Below are positions 7,001-39,004 of a stretch of DNA of 64,000 bases, piece by piece. The position numbers and the translations under genes were made by a program. Origin of the DNA: Blepharisma stoltei ATCC 30299 (Eukaryota; Protista; Ciliophora); contig CBFDEM010000021.1 of assembly GCA_965603825.1 (NCBI GenBank), positions 496,001 through 560,000 on the forward strand, written 5' to 3'. Within the stretch, counting starts at the first letter, position 1. Every line of letters begins with the position of its first letter. Under the pieces are notes generated by a model. That model did not search any database. It had not been told where the DNA came from and worked only from the letters and a program-made list of their open reading frames with translations.

Positions 7001-7405
7001 ATGGGAATCACAAATGATATTCACAGAGATGTGGCTACTGAGTGCTTAAATATGCTAAAAATGGCACAAGCCATGATAAATATTATAAATCAAGTCAATG
7101 AGGAGCATAATTCTAGCTTAAATATGAGGATTGGCCTTCATACAGGAGAAGTTATAGCTGGAATTATAGGGACTACTGTTGTCAGATATGATATTTATGG
7201 TCCTGATATGCTACTGGCTAATAAAATGGAAAGTGGTGGAGAAGCAGGAAAAATCAATGTGAGCGAGGTCACCAGAGAAATTTTAGATGCGAGAATTCCT
7301 GATAAACTGCAATATACATTCAATAGAGAAACTGTAGTAAAAAGCATTGACAGAGTAGTGAAAAGCTATTTTGTAACAACTCCAAGTGATTTATTTTTAC
7401 TCTAA
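1082..7405 (+). CDS. P4-type ATPase (flippase)-guanylyl cyclase fusion, alveolate type, 2107 aa
   Basis: Six track ORFs share one frame and are separated only by TGA. Motifs: NLFEQFQR, DKTGTLT, GIKI(W=TGA)MASGD, GDGNSD, then two class III cyclase domains (KIETVGKTY...GDTVNTASRM and KVHTIGDCY...YDIYG). Confidence 0.95.
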
Positions 7406-7603
7406 AAATTATCTCGAGCCACGCATAAATATACATTTTACCAGAAATATATTACCATTATCAATAAATTCATTAATAGATTTATTTTATATAGCAAATA
7501 ATGCGTCTGATATAGTAAATTAGCTCAGTTTTATATATTTATGATTAATTATGAATGAATTTTCTTGATACCCTAATTAAATTTAAGAATTAAATTATCG
7601 AAA

Positions 7604-9130
7604 ATGATTTTCAGCCCTAAATCTGCTTCTAGATCCAAAAGTTTTGAAATTGACGTGTCTAAATCTCAAACTCTCAAAAAGTCGACATTAAAGACTAGAA
7701 GTATCTTTAGAGCCCAAGAATTCGATATTTTCAATCGATCGCAAGATTTGTCTCCAGACGAGCGAGCGTATTTAAAAACTGCATTGGCTTCTCCAAAGTA
7801 CGAAAAAATGCCCCAGCTGTACTCTGCTATGGAAATTTTGAAAGAACGGCTAAAAAAAGACAAAAATAACTCCCCATCCCAATCGACATCGTTTCATCGG
7901 TTTTCCCACAATTCGCCAAAAAGCGAAAAATTGGGTCCAGGATATTATGAAAAATTTGACAGTAGTTTTGGCCCATCTTATGAATTTTCTAATATTGCTA
8001 GATCTGGAGATCAAGTGAATCACAAAATATTGAGTTTTCGTTACCTTAAAAGAAGTTTAACACCTGATAGACTAGAAAGCATTCTTAAGCACACTGTTGA
8101 TCTGGAAAATTATTGAAAATCAGCAAAAGAAAAGACCAAAGCTCATAATGAAAAAGTTTACTTAAAAAAGATGTGTAAGGTTGAAGGAGAAAGAAAAGAG
8201 TTTGATAAAAAAAGAAGAGAGTTACGTATCAAATATGATCAAAAATTGATAAAAATTCGAAAACTTGAAGCTATGGTGGTTAAGAAGAATTGATTGACTG
8301 TATTTAGTATATACTCGAGCTTAAACACAATTTATTACAGGATTAACAATAGAAAAATATTAAAATCAAATTCAAAAAAATGGCTCTATTTGTTATATTA
8401 TTTCTGCAAACTTTTTGGAAACATTCATAGGAAAATAAAAAAAATCAGAAAAAGGATAGCAAATAAAGTGAAATTTATATAGGCAATCTTAGGAATAACA
8501 AAAATTACAGTAACTTGAATTTACAGGAGAAGGCAAGAATTTTTATGGTGTCTTTTTCAAATCATAGAAAGATGCAAAACAAGAAATACATTATATTTAA
8601 TGATGTTTACTTGGCTGGGGAAAATATCTGAAATCCAAAGATTTTTCAAATTTTATCGCCCAATTTTGGAAGCAAGAAAAAAATGTTTAAAATTATTATG
8701 GGAAAAAGTTTGAAAAGAGCTTGAGTATGATGAATTTGTAGTTCCAAGAAGACTGACATCTAATAATAGAGCTGGATCTACTCAGCAAGCTATTACTCAT
8801 ATAGAATTTTCAATAAAAGAAAAATATATGAACGAATATCTTCACGATCGACTAAAAGTCCAAGCCAGAATGATGAGCAACTATGTTGAAATGAGTCGTA
8901 ATGTCAATAAAAAATTCCGCAGACATATGGGCTTCTGACACAATGAAGCTTCAATACAAGGGTTTGGTAGAAATTTAGTCATGGTTTCATATCCTAAGCC
9001 ATATCTAAAACTCTACTCTTCAGTTGATATTTATTTGACTTACATTAAAAGAGCCAAAGCTGATTCTATGATAGCAAAAGAAATTTCTTTAAGAAAGAAA
9101 AATCCAAGGTACTTTACAGTACTTAACTAA
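7604..9130 (+). CDS. Hypothetical basic protein with one 15-nt intron
   Basis: Open with UGA=Trp after removing intron 8468-8482, which contains the in-frame TAG; ends TAA 9128-9130. Confidence 0.7.
8468..8482 (+). other. 15-nt spliceosomal intron GTGAAATTTATATAG
   Basis: GT-AG with A at -6; removal extends the ORF by about 215 codons. Confidence 0.75.
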
Positions 9131-31627: not shown

Positions 31628-32269
31628 TTAATTTTTAGTAAACGAAAAAATATAAATATTTTTATCATTCTGTAGCAGCTCCCTGGCAAATCCTTTTGCT
31701 TCACTAATTTTTAATAATTCTTCATATACATTTCTTGCCCTGACGACATAACATAAAATGAATCTCCCATCATTTTCTAATAGCTTTTCAACAGTCCTAA
31801 ACAGTGGTTCAATGCTATGTATTCCATAAATGCACTCAGCGCCAATAATTATTGAATATTTGATTGGCAAATGCTTTTCCTCTAAACATGCTAAATTGTT
31901 TTCTTCATCCCAATCAATTTTGCAAACTTCAGCATTGCATGTAGAAAATTGTTTATTTTTCTCTAAAAGATTTACAACTACATCAATGCCATCAGTAAAA
32001 ACTATTTTGCTGCAAAATCTTGAGGCAACAAGACCACAAAATCCAGAACCTGCCCCAAGTTCAATGACTTCTTTTCCACTTATACACTCTGAATGATTGA
32101 TAAAATAATTAGATAATGCAATTGCACCAGGCCACAAAATTTGCCCAGTAAGATCATAGTCTGTTGTGGCTGAAGGCAATGCATAGAATTTCTGTGTGAA
32201 ATTTCCTAAAGACTCTTCATAAAGCCTATATTCTTCACATATAAAAAAGCCTTCAGGAATTCCTTCCAT
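31628..32269 (-). CDS. Family-16 (METTL21/23-like) protein methyltransferase
   Basis: TGQILWPGA, VIELGAGSG, FTD and IIGAECIY. Confidence 0.85.
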   Translation of the reverse strand: MEGIPEGFFICEEYRLYEESLGNFTQKFYALPSATTDYDLTGQILWPGAIALSNYFINHSECISGKEVIELGAGSGFCGLVASRFCSKIVFTDGIDVVVNLLEKNKQFSTCNAEVCKIDWDEENNLACLEEKHLPIKYSIIIGAECIYGIHSIEPLFRTVEKLLENDGRFILCYVVRARNVYEELLKISEAKGFARELLQNDKNIYIFSFTKN

Positions 32270-32379
32270 TTTAGACTTATTTATATATAATCAATTAGGC
32301 TATTTATGAAATAAAATGATAAATTGGAAAAATATTAGTAAAAAAGCACTATAAGTTTTATTAAATTCAATACGTCATC

Positions 32380-32750
32380 TTTTTCTACTTCTGCTCCCCC
32401 ATATATCCTTATCTAGCTCTGTTCTGGCTCCATTTACTTCCTATCCTTTAACCTTCAAGTCGTAAGACATTGATCTGACTTATGTATGGTCGTCATTAGT
32501 CTGAGCCATCTAGCACTTCTCCAATCTACTTGGTTATATAAGCCAGTAATTTATCTTCGATTTCGTATTTTCCTCTTTCTCAGACTTGTCTTCATCAAAA
32601 TCTTTCTGATCTACCTTATATTTCAAGTCCACCTTCGATTACCATAGTTTTATCTTCAATCTGGTCAATTTCTTTCATAGTATCCTCAAACTATCATAAC
32701 AGCTTATTTCCTCACCAGAATCTCATAATCCTCGATGCTCAGCTCATGGC
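32380..32750 (-). pseudogene. Possible decayed retroelement fragment
   Basis: Purine-rich minus strand, less AT-rich than normal spacers, with a stop-riddled frame; only a vague resemblance to an APE endonuclease. Confidence 0.25.
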
Positions 32751-33338
32751 AAATTTAATTTTGGCTCACCCTTTTGGTTTCATCCACCAAAAAAATTAAT
32801 AGCCCAAAATATGCATCATTTGTCGGAAGATTTATTCGCACACATATGAACCCCAATAGCTAAATTCAGCGCAAAATTAAAATGCTAGTTGATATTTCAA
32901 ATACATAAACTCAAATTTTGAATAAAAATGGCGAACAAGTGCTGCCAAATAATAATTGCAAAGCATTATAGATTTCTCTGGGGACCTGGGGTTTAGCATG
33001 TTGCGATGAAAACTAGTGATATTATTTGGGCAATCAAGCAGCCAAGGGGATGAGGAACAAAATTTTTAGAAGTCCCACAGAACTAGTATAGAAAATTAAG
33101 AAAAAGGCTTGAAAAAAGCGTTGTGAATATAGAGGAGGATTTGCAAAAATATAATAGATTAGCAATTGAAACTTTAAAGCTTTATTTGAAGTAATTGAGC
33201 ACGAGCAATAAAAAAATTTTGTGTAGCTTTATGGAATGTTTGCCATTTTCTTTATAAAAATCTGTCTAGTTAGATGCAATAAATGATTTATCTATAATTT
33301 TCGTCAAAATTAATAGTGAATATTGAATCATATAATAT

Positions 33339-36300
33339 ATGTCAAACCTTGAACAAAGATATCCGTCACTTCAATTAAGAGGCTCAACCGCTTCATATTC
33401 GCATAAGAGTCCAGATTCACATCTCGTTCCCTTTTTACTCCGAAACTCAAACGAAAGTGACACATCAAGATCTAACGACTCTGAAAGCCACCTAATTCGA
33501 GAATGAGTTATTAAAAATCCAAATGTTTATAAAATACTGCAAGAAAAGTCAAACTATCCAAGCTCTAAATCGTCCCTAAATATTTCAAAAGCAGGCAAAG
33601 GTGCAAGCATTTCAAATCACCTCGAAAACTCTTCTCAAATTTCAGAAATTTCTGGAGTTTTGGAATCAGGATTTCTTGACAAACCCGATGAGCCTTTCTG
33701 CACTTATCCGAATTGTTTAGAAAGAGCTGAATTTATTTGCAAATGCACAGATAAAAGCAATCTTATCTAGAATCAAGCGGTCATCCCGCCGACGATCCTT
33801 ATGGATCGATTTTTATTCATGTCGTTATTTTCCTCTGAGTCATCACTGGTGCATCCTTGAATGTGATATGCATTGCAGCTCTTTCCTTGAGTATCTCCAT
33901 ATGGTACAGCTTGACAATTCTATCTATCTCCTGAACTACGTCCCTTTTACCCCTTTCTATTCAACTGTAAGCTATCCTTTCATATCTGCAACTACATAAT
34001 AATATGTCCAGTAATTTAACATTTCCTGCATCTTCTACTTCTTCATCTTCATCTCTTGCTGATCCTGCGTTATCTCCATTTGATCAGTATATTGGTGCGG
34101 CTAGATTTGTCGGTGTACGTTGTGGATCTTCCTGTGTGGATTGCACTGGCCTAGACTGTTTCATCTCCATCTGTGAGTCTGCTACTACTCAGTCCTGTTC
34201 CATCCATCCCTGAATCATGTCTTCCAAGTTCAACTCATCCAGTTCTAAAACTGGTTGTAGTTCCTGCCACGGGTGCAGCGTTACTTGCGTTACCTGCTCA
34301 GTTTGCAGTACTTGTAATGGATGCATCTGCTGTGTTGGATGCGGAGAGTGTGTTGATTGAGATGGAAGTGGTGCCGGATGTGTCGATTGCATCATTAGTA
34401 GTGTTTGTGCTAAGTGTTGTGCCCCTGTCGATTGCAGCGGTTGTGGAGATTCTGAACGTATTGGTTGTTTCAGCTGAGGTGCCTGTATCGGTCGTGCTAG
34501 GTGTGTAGCCTGTAAAGGTTGCGATGGGTGCAGTGGTTGCGGCACTTGTATTGTCGTCTGTGTCGAGTGTAGCGTCTGTGATGATTGCAATGACTGTAGT
34601 ATTCCAGAATGTAGTGTCTGTATCGGTTGTGATACTTGTAATAATTGCAATGGATGTAATGAATGTGGCACATTTTGTTCTTGTATTGAATGCTGTATTT
34701 GTTTTGACTGCAGTGACTCTGAACATAACGATTGTACTGTTTGTGGAGCTTGTAGCGGTTGTGGTGGGTGTAGTGACTGTGATGCACTTGTCGTTTGTGC
34801 TGAGTATTGCACCTGTACTGTTTGCAGTGACTGTGGCGATCTTGAGCGTGATGACTGTACCTGTGTCGACTGCAGTGGTTGTGGCGTTTCTAAGTGTGGT
34901 GGCAGTTGGTCTGATTGTGAAGACTGTAACGTCCGTAAATTTCGTGGAGTTTGTGTTGGGTGTTGCAACTGTATCGCCTGTGGTGTATGTGACGGGGTTG
35001 TAGCCTGCGGTGCAAGCGATGACTGTGCTTGTGTTGAGTGTTGCATCTGTAATGATTGCATTGACTGTAGTGAATCAGAGTGTGGTGTCTGTATCGGTTG
35101 TGATACCTGTAGTAATTGCGAAGGATGCATTAGTACTTGTGTTGAATGCTGTACTTGCTTTGGTTGCAATGATTGTTGTGATTCTAAATGTGACAGCTGT
35201 ATTGTTTGTGGAGCCTGTAATGATTGTGTTGGGTTTAGTGACTGTGATGCACCTATCGCTTGTGCTGAGTGCTGCACCTGTACTGCCTGCAGTGATTGTG
35301 ATGACTTTGGGTGTGATGACTGTACCTGTGCTGAATGCAGTGACTGTGGCGATTTCAGGTGTAGTGGCAGTTGGTCTGATTGCGGGGATTGTAACGACTG
35401 TATATTTTGTGGTGTTTGTGACGGATGTTGCAACTGTACCGCTTGTGGTACATGTGGTGGATCTATAGTCTGTGGTGCAGGGGGTGGTTGTGCCTGTGGT
35501 GAGGTGGGTTGTGGGGTCTGTCAATTTCGCAGTAGCGGGGCTATTTCTTCCTCGGCCAATCCTTGTAACGCCTTTACGATCCCTTCTATCATCTCTTTCC
35601 TGTGGCCAGCGTATAATGGGCAGTCTACGAGTATGTGTTCTTCAGATTCTGCTATTTCGCATGTCGTACATTTGGGGTTGCTACATAAGTGTCTGGTGAA
35701 CGCGCATTCATTGCTGCTATTGAAGCCTGCTCTCATCCTATGCATTGCTCCTATCGCAGTTTCCATGTGTGAGTTCATAACCACATAAAGAGCGATTTGC
35801 GTTGTTTCCATTCCTTCAGTTGCTCATCTGTAGAGCTTTGTTGTTTTGAATGTTTCTTTTCGCAGCCTAGACTCCAGTTCTAATTGGTTCAGCCTTTTCA
35901 TCGCCTCTTTTAGAGTGTTTTTCCACGTCTTTGCATCTATCAGCTTAATTTGTCTACTATTGTATCTGTGCATGTCTAGTTCTACCAGGTACATATTTGC
36001 CCTATTTTCCCAACCGGTCCTAGTGGGACAATTCTTGTTTGGGCTCCGTGTCTGACTGCTATCTTTCCCGAATCTAGCGCCTTCTTCTTTGCTTGACTAC
36101 TGGTGAAGATTACCATCGCATCACCAGATGGCAATTGTCTGCACCGCAAAATCTCCCCCGGTTTGGTTGCTTGTTCCAGCGCAAGCATCAGTGCTGAATA
36201 AAGCTCCCTTTTACTAGCTAGGTCATCCTTCCTTGCATATTTCGATAAGTACACTTTAATGGCATGCTCAAGCAGATGATTTTCTTGTATTTCCGGCAGT

Positions 36301-37618
36301 ATTTCCATAGGAGCCGCATATCCAAAGAAGGTTCCACCACTACTAAGTCCCAAAAACTGGAGATCCTCGTTCTGGGCAGCTTTTAGCGTCACCGTTTTCT
36401 TTCTCTTTTGGCTCATAAAAATGAAAGTCAGATAAAAGCAATCAATGATGCCAGTACCATTTAGGTGGGCATATAAAGTGGCTTTCGAATTCAGAACATC
36501 ATATATGGGCGTTTAATATTATGGTCGATCCTCGTGCAACAGATGCAATTTGTGAGTTCTTGCATGAAAAGAATAGAAAATTATCTGAAGATATTGATAA
36601 GATTAGCAAAGAAGTTGCGTTATTAACAGGCGAACTAAAAAGGCTTGAAGATGAAAAAGCTGAAAATATAAAAATATTAAAATTAGTGGAGTCATGCGAA
36701 AGTGTGCTAAAACAAAATTTGAGTGAATTTGATAAAATTTTAATAAATGAGCCATGAGAAGCCCTAAGAAAATTTTCTGAGCTTTACGAAAACAAAAAGA
36801 TTTACGACTATGCTAAATCTTCATTGCCTTTCACTAAGTCTTTTAGATATTTTTCTGATAATTCAAAAACTGAGATGAGCTATATTGCTTTTCCAAGAGC
36901 AGGCACATCAGAACTTATTTATTTAAATTTAGAAGATATGACTTCACAGTCAGTATCAATTAAGTGGCTCCAAAATCTGCAATTGTTTGGCTATACTCCT
37001 ATCCCTGGCCGCAAGTGTTTATTCTTTTATGGAGGATATAATACCGGCTTAAGACAATCAACTGGAAGAACTTTTTATTTAACCGACGATCAACAAATTA
37101 TAGATTTGCCAGATGGCAAACCTGCTTGTGATCTTGCGATAATTTACCATAAGGATTTTGTATATGCTTTGGGAGGAAATAATGATAAAGTATCAGCGAA
37201 ATTCAATTTGGAACTTAACAAGTGGGAATATTTATGGCCACTTCCTGAAGGGGATTATCGCGAATCTATAATTACTGGTTATAAAAATTATATTTTAATA
37301 ACTGCAAGATATTTAGATAAAGTTATTAGATATAGCATCAAAAACGATTATTATGCTGATATCCAAAATTTGACCCTAAAAGGAGATGCCATAAAACTAT
37401 TAATTTCGAGCGATGACAAAGTGTTTGTTATTGAACTATGTGGAAATATTTATCAGAATATAAATCAATCCTTAAAAAAATGAGAAAGGGTTGGCAGAAA
37501 TGATGTGCTGAATTGTAGCATTCCTACATATACAGTAAGATTTAGAAATAATTTTATTGTGTCAATTTGGAAAATCAGCTGATTAAATTTAATCTGAAGA
37601 AAAGATCATTTAAAATAA
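33339..37618 (+). CDS. Cys/His Zn-finger + coiled-coil + Kelch-like protein, interrupted by an insertion (segments 33339-33762 and 36444-37618)
   Basis: The ATG 33339 frame joins 36444 in frame after removing the element plus one TSD: ...CTYPNCLERAEFICKCTDKSN|QWCQYHLGGH...; Kelch GG/YxxGG motifs lie downstream. Confidence 0.8.
33748..33762 (+). repeat. Target-site duplication, left copy CAGATAAAAGCAATC
   Basis: Exact 15-bp match to 36429-36443. Confidence 0.95.
33799..35994 (-). CDS. Element ORF2-like remnant: LINE C-terminal Zn knuckle + about 440-aa Q/P/S/T repeat + C-terminal tail (731 aa)
   Basis: Track ORFs 35521-35811 and 34189-35433 join via TGA and stay open to TAA at 33799-33801. 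Confidence 0.65.
34004..35788 (+). CDS. Antisense Cys-rich (CxxC-repeat, metallothionein-like) ORF, 594 aa
   Basis: Hand translation finds no TAA/TAG from ATG 34004 to TAA 35786-35788; about 120 Cys codons in 34261-35520. Coding status is unproven. Confidence 0.35.
34255..35520. repeat. Degenerate 9-nt-period repeat with a higher-order ~465-470 bp duplication
   Basis: GTCTGTATCGGTTGTGATAC at ~34616 and ~35087; GGCAGTTGGTCTGATTG at ~34901 and ~35366. Confidence 0.85.
35982..36416 (-). CDS. Element 5' ORF (ORF1/Gag-like N-terminal fragment, 144 aa)
   Basis: ATG is 12 nt from the element 5' end; RQLPSGDAMVIFTS..AKKKAL resembles the degenerate RRM-like region of LINE ORF1 proteins. Confidence 0.55.
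   Translation of the reverse strand: MSQKRKKTVTLKAAQNEDLQFLGLSSGGTFFGYAAPMEILPEIQENHLLEHAIKVYLSKYARKDDLASKRELYSALMLALEQATKPGEILRCRQLPSGDAMVIFTSSQAKKKALDSGKIAVRHGAQTRIVPLGPVGKIGQICTW
36429..36443 (+). repeat. Target-site duplication, right copy
   Basis: Exact match to 33748-33762. Confidence 0.95.
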
Positions 37619-38116: not shown

Positions 38117-39004
38117 ATGAAAGCTCAGGTAGCAATCATGGCACTTTTAAAATTGAAAAACATAAGGAAATCAAATCTACGTGAAATCATAGAGACTTCA
38201 GATTTATTTAACAAAGACTTAAATGAGCTATATGAAATTGTTCGTGAAAAACTAAAAAGTTCCCAAAATTTCAATGAATGGAAAAAGATTTATAAAATCT
38301 CATCAAATGAATTTTTGCAAGCCGAGTTATTTGATATAAAAATAATCACAATCCTAGATAAAGAATTTCCAGATCAATTGAAAAAAATTCCTGATCCTCC
38401 TATGATTCTATTTGGAAAAGGTGACATTTCTCTATTAAAATTTCCTTCTCAGGTTGCAGTTGTAGGCACTAGATACCCAACTTCATATGGCTCACAGCTA
38501 TCATATGAAATAAGCTCACAATTAACACAAAACAGTATCTTAATAGTGAGTGGCCTGGCCTTAGGAATTGATACACAAGCTCATTTGGGGTGCTTACAAA
38601 ATCAGGGTAAAACAATCTCTGTTTTATCTCATGGATTAGACTATATCTATCCACCTGAAAATAAAGTATTAGCTCAAAAAATCATTGATAATGGAGGATT
38701 ATTGCTCAGTGAATATCCTCCAGGAACAAAGCCTAAGAAATTTAGATTTTTAGCCAGAAATAGAATTCAAAGTGGATTGTCGCAAGCTGTTGTGGTGATA
38801 GAGGCTAAAAAAGGTGGGGGAACCACTACTACTATTAAACATTGCATTAAACAAGGAAAAATTTTATATTGTGTAAACCCAGGAAATGAAGGAAATAAAG
38901 CAGATTTCGCAGCAAATTTCTTTTTCATTGAAAATGGAAATGCTAAAAGTTTGGAAAATGGAGAAATCCAAGATTTGTTGCAAGATATCAGAAATACTAA
39001 TTAA
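38117..39004 (+). CDS. dprA: DNA-processing protein DprA/Smf (bacterial type)
   Basis: DPPMILFGKG, VAVVGTR, IVSGLALGIDTQAH, LLSEYPPG and FLARNRIQSGLSQAVVVIEA. Confidence 0.92.
   Translation: MKAQVAIMALLKLKNIRKSNLREIIETSDLFNKDLNELYEIVREKLKSSQNFNEWKKIYKISSNEFLQAELFDIKIITILDKEFPDQLKKIPDPPMILFGKGDISLLKFPSQVAVVGTRYPTSYGSQLSYEISSQLTQNSILIVSGLALGIDTQAHLGCLQNQGKTISVLSHGLDYIYPPENKVLAQKIIDNGGLLLSEYPPGTKPKKFRFLARNRIQSGLSQAVVVIEAKKGGGTTTTIKHCIKQGKILYCVNPGNEGNKADFAANFFFIENGNAKSLENGEIQDLLQDIRNTN

Follow-up and report, generated by a model that had tools for sequence, protein, structure and literature searches.

In Blepharisma stoltei ATCC 30299, LINE-like sequences have been described as true somatic sequences (Seah et al. 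2023; PMC9942856), and the LINE and LINE-RTE-X families rnd-1_family-273, -276 and rnd-4_family-193 are resident in the macronucleus (MAC). In the same study, coverage dips at some LINE loci of this genome were consistent with partial excision, and its RVT_1 genes were found to be near-silent. The Tc1/mariner and Bogo/BstTc1 'mobile IESs' undergo excision at the TA that their own duplication contains and are absent from MAC DNA, with retention of 0.02 or less (PMC9942856).

The locus analysed here lies within a window of 64,000 nucleotides, which is the whole stretch of DNA under analysis. A previous, sequence-only reading had described in it an insertion of 2.67 kb, possibly a retroelement, with a perfect 15-bp repeat at both ends. 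This was borne out, as CAGATAAAAGCAATC was found in exactly two copies across the window (33748-33762 and 36429-36443), even when 1 mismatch was allowed. In shuffled versions of the window, 0.03 matches to the 15-mer were expected, and two or more were obtained in 0 of 100 shuffles. The sequence between both copies measured 2,666 bp, in agreement with the size given before, and had a GC content of 45% versus about 31% in the flanks. The two repeats constitute the target-site duplication of a retroelement, as had been read, and the TA that had been pointed out in it was located at 33752-33753 of the left copy.

The host gene is interrupted within a Cys/His motif. Its 5' fragment (33339..33770, + strand) starts at ATG 33339, includes the first half of the motif and reads ...KSN-L-I-stop, the TAG at 33768-33770 being the premature stop that had been predicted with the insert present. 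The second half of the motif lies in the 3' fragment (36444..37618, + strand), along with a coiled-coil and a Kelch-like part. When 33763-36443 (the insert plus one repeat) was deleted, 33339-33762 and 36444-37618 were fused in one frame, giving a host ORF of 532 aa that is open with UGA=Trp and ends at TAA 37616-37618. Six in-frame TGA codons were counted in this rejoined ORF, with a UGA=Trp usage as elsewhere in the genome. The rejoined motif, C-x4-C-x7-C-x-C-x7-C-x2-H-x3-H, was contiguous and had the same spacing in four paralogues (L039, L040, L042 and L043), and this uninterrupted form, along with the 532-aa frame, confirmed that precise removal of the insert restores the host ORF.

For the Zn-finger part of the Zn-finger/Kelch description, the Cys/His pattern is present, although no Pfam family matched it, and the Zn-finger label thus denotes the pattern only. 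The Kelch assignment was borderline, as Kelch_6 reached 25.1 bits on the C-terminal part (cut-off 25.3; E 1.6e-5); on one paralogue, the score was 24.2 bits. At least 150 scored paralogues of this Zn-finger/coiled-coil/Kelch family were found in the genome. The remainder of the host ORF has no further stops, which is compatible with a very recent insertion as well as with continued use; most likely, this paralogue is dead or truncated.

The insert itself is a retrotransposon copy of the non-LTR type (33763..36428, - strand), running from a 5' end at 36428 to a 3' end at 33763. An ORF1-like gene of 144 aa (35985..36416, - strand) had no match in Pfam, and about 20 divergent homologues of it were detected in the genome, upstream of endonuclease and reverse-transcriptase (RT) regions. 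It is followed by an ORF of 724 aa (33799..35973, - strand; UGA=Trp), corresponding to the post-RT end of ORF2. Within this ORF, a weak zf-RVT-like CCHC region was located at 35521-35811 and a Q/S/P-rich repeat domain, with repeats of roughly 470 bp, at about 34189-35433, while its C-terminus is conserved. No Pfam family was found for the Q-rich domain, and only a small 24-bp array was reported by Tandem Repeats Finder on the insert, the domain being a degenerate repeat of its roughly 470-bp unit. In the 3' UTR (33763..33830, - strand), both a stem-loop, GAUCC-AUAA-GGAUC, and a CUAGAUAA box are conserved, and the stem is preserved in relatives through changed pairs. The tail at the 3' end amounts to at most one GATT unit, which is indistinguishable from the duplication. 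Both termini of the element are intact.

In contrast to its termini, the enzymatic core of the element is gone, and a domain search of the insert yielded no match to RVT_1 or to an endonuclease. On the same contig, a full-length relative (C21:892096-897286), which has a duplication of 18 bp and ends in a (TTGA)n tail, carries Exo_endo_phos_2 at C21:893426-893788 and RVT_1 at C21:894578-895339; another relative has a 12-bp duplication, and the microsatellite tails of relatives are of the (TTGA)n or (ATAG)n type. The ORF1 and post-RT parts of the insert share 50-59% protein identity with the relative at C21:892096-897286, and about 3.2 kb of the latter is skipped between element positions of about 420 and 435. 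The internal deletion junction was placed at 36006..36014, on a 9-nt microhomology (TTTCCCAAC), where contigs of run X6, one of the DNA libraries, fork into about 3.2 kb of additional sequence, as in full-length copies. The insert is therefore a non-autonomous LINE-type derivative that lacks its own endonuclease and RT. The assembly contains just one copy of the deleted form, and the depth specific to its junction likewise corresponds to a single copy.

Full-length copies that are not in the somatic assembly differed from the insert at only 12 of 2,255 positions, so the activity of this LINE lineage is very recent, and the lineage gives rise to non-autonomous derivatives. These near-identical copies were seen only in run X6, in which full-length copies without a counterpart in the MAC assembly were in about three-fold excess. 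Two 30-mers taken from read contigs, one from an alternative flank and one from internal full-length sequence, had no match in the MAC assembly. From this, we infer that X6 is a germline-enriched fraction, and the full-length copies outside the MAC assembly are the likely source of endonuclease and RT.

The same earlier reading had suggested that the element may be a retrotransposon-derived IES, excised during development at its own duplication. The fate of the insert was followed in assembled contigs from three DNA libraries (X1, X4 and X6) and one RNA library (X8), a type of read evidence in which rare variants are lost and only mean depth is kept, so that low-level excision lies below its reach; X1 and X4 may in addition be source libraries of the assembly. 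The left junction was covered by X1, X4 and X6, and bridging of both junctions came from X6. In the three DNA libraries, the left-flank contig continued through 33762 to 33789. In X4, the insert was recovered as one contig of 2,669 nt with a depth of 172, of which 20-55 come from other copies, compared with 160 in the flank. X6 contigs bridged the filled junction on the left (33333-33789) as well as on the right (36399-36794), and a depth of 116 was measured for the contig unique to the deleted form, with flanks at 110-129. A search with a 78-aa ORF beside the right junction retrieved no contig on record from other runs. For the loose ends of the X6 contigs at 33333 and 36794, unannotated IESs were considered and rejected, as the public MAC+IES assembly has no IES there. 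An assembly artefact was likewise rejected, since both junctions are spanned by contigs of separate libraries.

The empty-site molecules that excision would produce were looked for at the contig level, and no empty-site contig or joint was found in X1, X4, X6 or X8; as branches with only 12-14% of the depth had been retained and broke contigs, any empty form more abundant than roughly this should have been visible. The empty junction was also absent from the whole 41-Mb assembly with up to 2 mismatches. In X8, neither the junctions nor the 5' part of the host gene were covered by RNA contigs, and the RNA contigs over the element carried the alleles of the window. The public MAC+IES assembly, which is colinear with the window over 31979-37402, has no IES marked at the element but seven nearby, one of them within the host gene. 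The latter is a genuine TA-bound IES of 161 bp at 37401..37402, present in that assembly and absent from the window.

Measured against the IES features of PMC9942856, the element has a TA-containing direct repeat at its boundaries but is not nearly absent from MAC DNA, as its filled junctions are unbroken and its depth is close to that of the flanks. Developmental excision at the duplication is therefore unsupported, with neither an empty-site contig nor an annotated IES at the element. What fits best is that the somatic macronucleus retains the insert at essentially full copy number and does not remove it as an IES, which was the fallback of the first reading, namely a gene-killing insertion kept in the soma. 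Because the element is not removed, the host gene is broken up into two ORFs, annotated in the public record as separate genes of 143 aa (the 5' fragment) and 365 aa (the 3' fragment, with its start at ATG 36521).

An incipient or inefficient IES, excised at the TA of the duplication in a minority of MAC molecules or only in developing macronuclei and leaving some intact gene copies, is unlikely. The TA in the duplication is in its favour, given that about three quarters of the IESs of this species are bounded by TA-containing direct repeats, and so is the partial excision at some LINE loci (PMC9942856); moreover, once the 20-55 from other copies are subtracted, the X4 insert depth could fall somewhat below that of the flank. 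Nevertheless, the three DNA libraries, in which branches of 12-14% were kept, showed neither an empty joint nor an interruption of the contig at 33762, the junction-specific depth of 116 in X6 is close to that of the flanks, the MAC+IES assembly has no IES at the element, and in X8 both the junctions and the 5' part of the host are free of RNA. In its specific form, precise excision at the TA of the element's own duplication in less than about 12% of MAC molecules, or only in fresh exconjugants, such a process is quite unlikely. If it did occur, a trickle of intact gene copies would be maintained, and the duplications of retroelements would fall under the same excisase logic as those of DNA transposons.

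An insertion confined to the soma, by retrotransposition into the polyploid macronucleus over decades of culture and fixation by assortment with an empty germline site, would agree with the more than 50 years that the strain has been in culture, with the very young appearance of the insertion (a perfect duplication in an otherwise intact host ORF) and with transcription of the element from the somatic copy, given that the RNA contigs carry the window's alleles. It is nonetheless highly improbable, as the filled junctions are unbroken at flank-like depth in X6, which is probably germline-rich, and the sole near-identical copies of full length, from which endonuclease and RT were likely supplied, are outside the MAC assembly. 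A heterozygous or population-polymorphic insertion, of which the assembler picked the filled allele, is scarcely credible even though some LINE loci are possibly missing from part of the population (PMC9942856), because an empty allele at 50% would break the flank contig at 33762, which is unbroken, no flank variants were found in any DNA run, the insert depth is close to that of the flank, and the MAC genome is essentially homozygous (PMC9942856).

The locus is thus very probably the product of a recent insertion of a non-autonomous LINE-type element by target-primed reverse transcription (TPRT), now fixed, retained in the MAC and gene-breaking. In this sequence of events, TPRT would have placed the element into the Zn-finger-like motif of one family member and generated the 15-bp duplication. 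Read on the element strand, the duplication begins with GATTG, in agreement with the (GATT/TTGA)n-type tail of relatives, and this match suggests priming through microhomology. The ORF1-like gene would have been kept in the copy, together with the 3' stem-loop and the post-RT end of ORF2, the roughly 3.2 kb with the endonuclease and RT having been lost; the copy may have been mobilised in trans or have arisen by template switching at the 9-nt microhomology. The insertion was probably tolerated through the redundancy of the paralogues, and the copy would have been fixed and kept in the soma with the host paralogue broken.

Internally deleted LINE derivatives that are mobilised in trans are known, for example, among I, L1 and CR1-type elements. 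The insert resembles them in its intact termini, 3' stem-loop and duplication, in the loss of the enzymatic core and in the microhomology at the deletion. It also belongs with the somatic LINE repeats of B. stoltei, sharing their genome and their element class, with APE and RVT_1 in full-length relatives, and, like them, it has normal coverage in MAC DNA with reads that continue into the flanks. It differs from them in lying inside a protein-coding gene and in having neither endonuclease nor RT, so that it falls outside the RVT_1-based counts of PMC9942856; in contrast to the near-silent RVT_1 genes of that study, RNA contigs exist for this copy. Somatic retroelements of this genome have already been published (PMC9942856), and this gene-breaking insertion is of that type, an ordinary disruptive event in a highly redundant gene family. 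It provides a clean, datable case of the general point made in the Blepharisma germline paper, that an element in a gene, if the excision machinery fails to recognise it, remains in the soma, where the gene is broken by it, and the locus offers a convenient PCR-sized assay of whether retroelement insertions can acquire excision.

With transposon-derived IESs, the element shares a TA-containing direct repeat around an intragenic mobile element whose precise removal would restore the ORF. However, whereas those IESs show a retention of 0.02 or less, this element is retained at about 100%, and its repeat is the 15-bp TPRT duplication of a retroelement rather than the TA, TAA or TATA duplication of a DDE transposase. 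Both behaviours are seen in one gene, in which the LINE copy stays while a classical IES 1 kb away is precisely removed.

The 15-mer described in the sequence-only reading as bounding an insertion of about 2.67 kb was found in two places only, at the boundaries 33748-33762 and 36429-36443 (0.03 matches expected from shuffles), with 2,666 bp between them. The GC content of this insert is 45%, versus 31% and 30.5% in the 3 kb on either side; that of the window is 33%, and in-frame TGA is found there at conserved positions of long ORFs. With the insert, the frame of the Zn-finger/coiled-coil/Kelch-like host gene was confirmed to stop early, at TAG 33768-33770, and the expected repair of the ORF by precise removal also held, as joining 33339-33762 to 36444-37618 opened a frame of 532 aa that reads UGA as Trp six times and ends at TAA. 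Its motif C-x4-C-x7-C-x-C-x7-C-x2-H-x3-H is unbroken in the four paralogues that align across the insertion point, so the host state without the insert is ancestral.

A Pfam search of the host returned a borderline Kelch_6 alone, in the C-terminal part, and no match for the Cys/His motif. The host family is very large (387 candidates, at least 150 of them scored as matches) and is one of this genome's large expansions, with paralogues densely clustered in tandem at C44:636000-686000, C3:408000-417000 and C13:917000-930000 of the window's own assembly (G000). Public annotation splits the locus into four separate genes of 143, 724, 144 and 365 aa, and assigns a DNA_processg_A (DprA/Smf) domain to a 295-aa ORF at 38117-39004.

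The insert (33763-36428) lies on the minus strand, with its 5' end at 36428 and reading leftwards. It carries an ORF1-like gene of 144 aa (36416-35985, minus strand) and a 724-aa ORF (UGA as Trp; 35973-33799, minus strand) that begins in post-RT sequence and includes a weak zf-RVT-like CCHC region, a repeat domain (21% Gln, 14% Ser, 12% Pro) and a C-terminus kept among relatives. Cys-rich plus-strand ORFs (34004-35788) sit opposite this Q/S/P-rich repeat; because relatives conserve the minus-strand frame of the repeat, they look like a side effect of codons rich in CAG/CAA/ACA being read on the complementary strand. A 3' UTR stem-loop (GAUCC-AUAA-GGAUC) is also kept, and relatives preserve the stem via changed pairs.

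At the DNA level the insert is single copy in the whole assembly, and the genome holds about 20 homologues of ORF1 and 24 of the tail. The spacing from ORF1 to tail is about 170 bp in the insert versus 3-3.8 kb in full-length relatives. In a translated comparison with one of these, C21:892096-897286, ORF1 matched element positions 1-435 and the post-RT region matched 420-866; the roughly 3.2 kb skipped in between carry Exo_endo_phos_2 (893426-893788) and RVT_1 (894578-895339), whereas a search for these two domains gave zero matches inside the insert. With its endonuclease/RT segment missing and its termini preserved, the insert is a deletion derivative that is non-autonomous and keeps both ends competent. 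Relatives show duplications of other lengths: 18 bp, with a (TTGA)n tail, in the full-length copy just described, and 12 bp, with an (ATAG)n tail, in another; in the insert (GATTG) and both relatives (3/3), the first bases of the duplication equal the tail unit. Such a match is the expected signature of microhomology-primed target-primed reverse transcription, which may be the process behind these duplications.

This C21 relative, on the same contig as the window (L047:2080-7327; C21:892080-897327), is near full length, has a 1,320-codon open frame (UGA as Trp), the 18-bp duplication TGATTAAGGTGTCTAAAC and the tail (TTGA)7, and makes a good reference copy for the element's lineage. At C2:423000-431000, a degraded LINE copy is flanked by two similar host-ORF copies (205-aa ORFs at 1026-1640 and 7385-7999 of that locus, with matching minus-strand ORFs), and this element may lie in, or have been copied along with, a roughly 6.4-kb tandem duplication.

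The assembly holding the window comprises 41.46 Mb in 64 contigs. By exact-protein look-up, the locus was found in GCA_914767885.1 on contig CAJZBQ010000021.1, which measures 1.23 Mb versus 0.95 Mb for the matching contig of the window's assembly. This fits a somatic (MAC) assembly for the window and a 'MAC+IES' reconstruction for the public record (PMC9942856, PMC9942806). Over window 31979-37402 the MAC+IES record is colinear, with a single mismatch at 31981, and its inserted IESs fall at about 31338, 31837, 31985, 37401/2, 37841, 39682 and 40017. The one at 37401/2, TA-bound and 161 bp long (7422-7582 in the reverse complement of the public stretch L050), lies inside the Kelch-like part of the host gene, has long, near-palindromic ends and is cleanly missing from the window. 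Therefore, the excision machinery edits the host gene precisely 1 kb away from the retroelement, which is treated as somatic sequence.

Read evidence consisted of assembled contigs only, from the DNA runs X1, X4 and X6. X1 and X4 are MAC-like in appearance and may be source libraries of the assembly; X6 (82 Mb of contigs, same study as X1) is probably a sucrose fraction from the upper, germline-enriched part of the gradient. In both X1 and X4, one 7,371-nt contig extended from the left flank across the duplication and ended only at 33789, where a short side branch belonging to other copies of the element joins. In X4 one contig of 2,669 nt (33760-36428) makes up the insert, with a depth of 172 versus 160 in the flank. 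X6 bridged both filled junctions (33333-33789 and 36399-36794), and a soma-only origin of the insert is very improbable.

Over the shared element parts, X6 depth was 440-463 versus 110 in the flank, with 12 positions differing from the window, all transitions. At 36006 and 36014 its contigs fork into contigs of 2,830 and 497 nt (depth about 300), which are the endonuclease/RT segment that full-length copies have and the insert lacks; 9 nt, TTTCCCAAC, are common to both sides of this deletion junction, and a contig of 51 nt that represents the deleted form alone reaches depth 116, equal to the flank. Two sequences from the read contigs, one an alternative flank and the other internal to full-length copies, had no match in the MAC assembly, so the near-identical sister copies are probably germline-limited. 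X6 contigs also depart from the window at 33333-33341 and 36794 (28 and 68 unmatched letters), the former just upstream of, and overlapping, the host ATG at 33339, in an ATAATATAT stretch; the MAC+IES record has no annotated IES at either site.

Developmental excision of the insert as an IES, proposed from sequence, was not supported: filled junctions were unbroken, insert depth was about that of the flank, and the MAC+IES record has no IES here. No empty-site joint was listed among the contigs of the three runs. Weak side branches, at 24/173 and 19.5/160, were kept and broke contigs; therefore, an empty form at comparable depth would be expected to break the flank contig at 33762, where no break was seen. 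From this we infer a rough ceiling of about 12% for the empty form, and low-level excision beneath it is unlikely. The insert is probably a deleted LINE that is fixed at this site, stays in the soma and splits the host gene.

Contigs of X8, whose status as RNA is a guess, cover 33827-36183 of the insert and 36724-37259 of the host 3' part. Of the 12 variant sites, 10 show the window's allele in these contigs, and both alleles occur at the other two. Neither junction is covered, nor is the 5' part of the host (33322-33695), and, while contigs cannot show strand or absence, this pattern suggests that transcription of the somatic element copy starts inside the element and that the sample holds no intact host mRNA. 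Retroelement genes containing RVT_1 are reported to be near-silent in this genome (PMC9942856), in contrast to the insert with its probable-RNA contigs; lacking RT, it would fall outside that count.

For this genome, LINE-like sequences are reported to be genuinely somatic; some loci have coverage dips read as partial excision, and others have uniform coverage (PMC9942856). The same study argued that unexcised intragenic insertions would be deleterious, and modelled a duplication with an excisase-recognised submotif as allowing footprint-free excision, which is the same idea as that of the sequence-only reading. Compared with those somatic LINE loci, the insert belongs to the uniform-coverage class, and the locus adds to a kind already known a new individual case that is very young, lies inside a gene and is non-autonomous.
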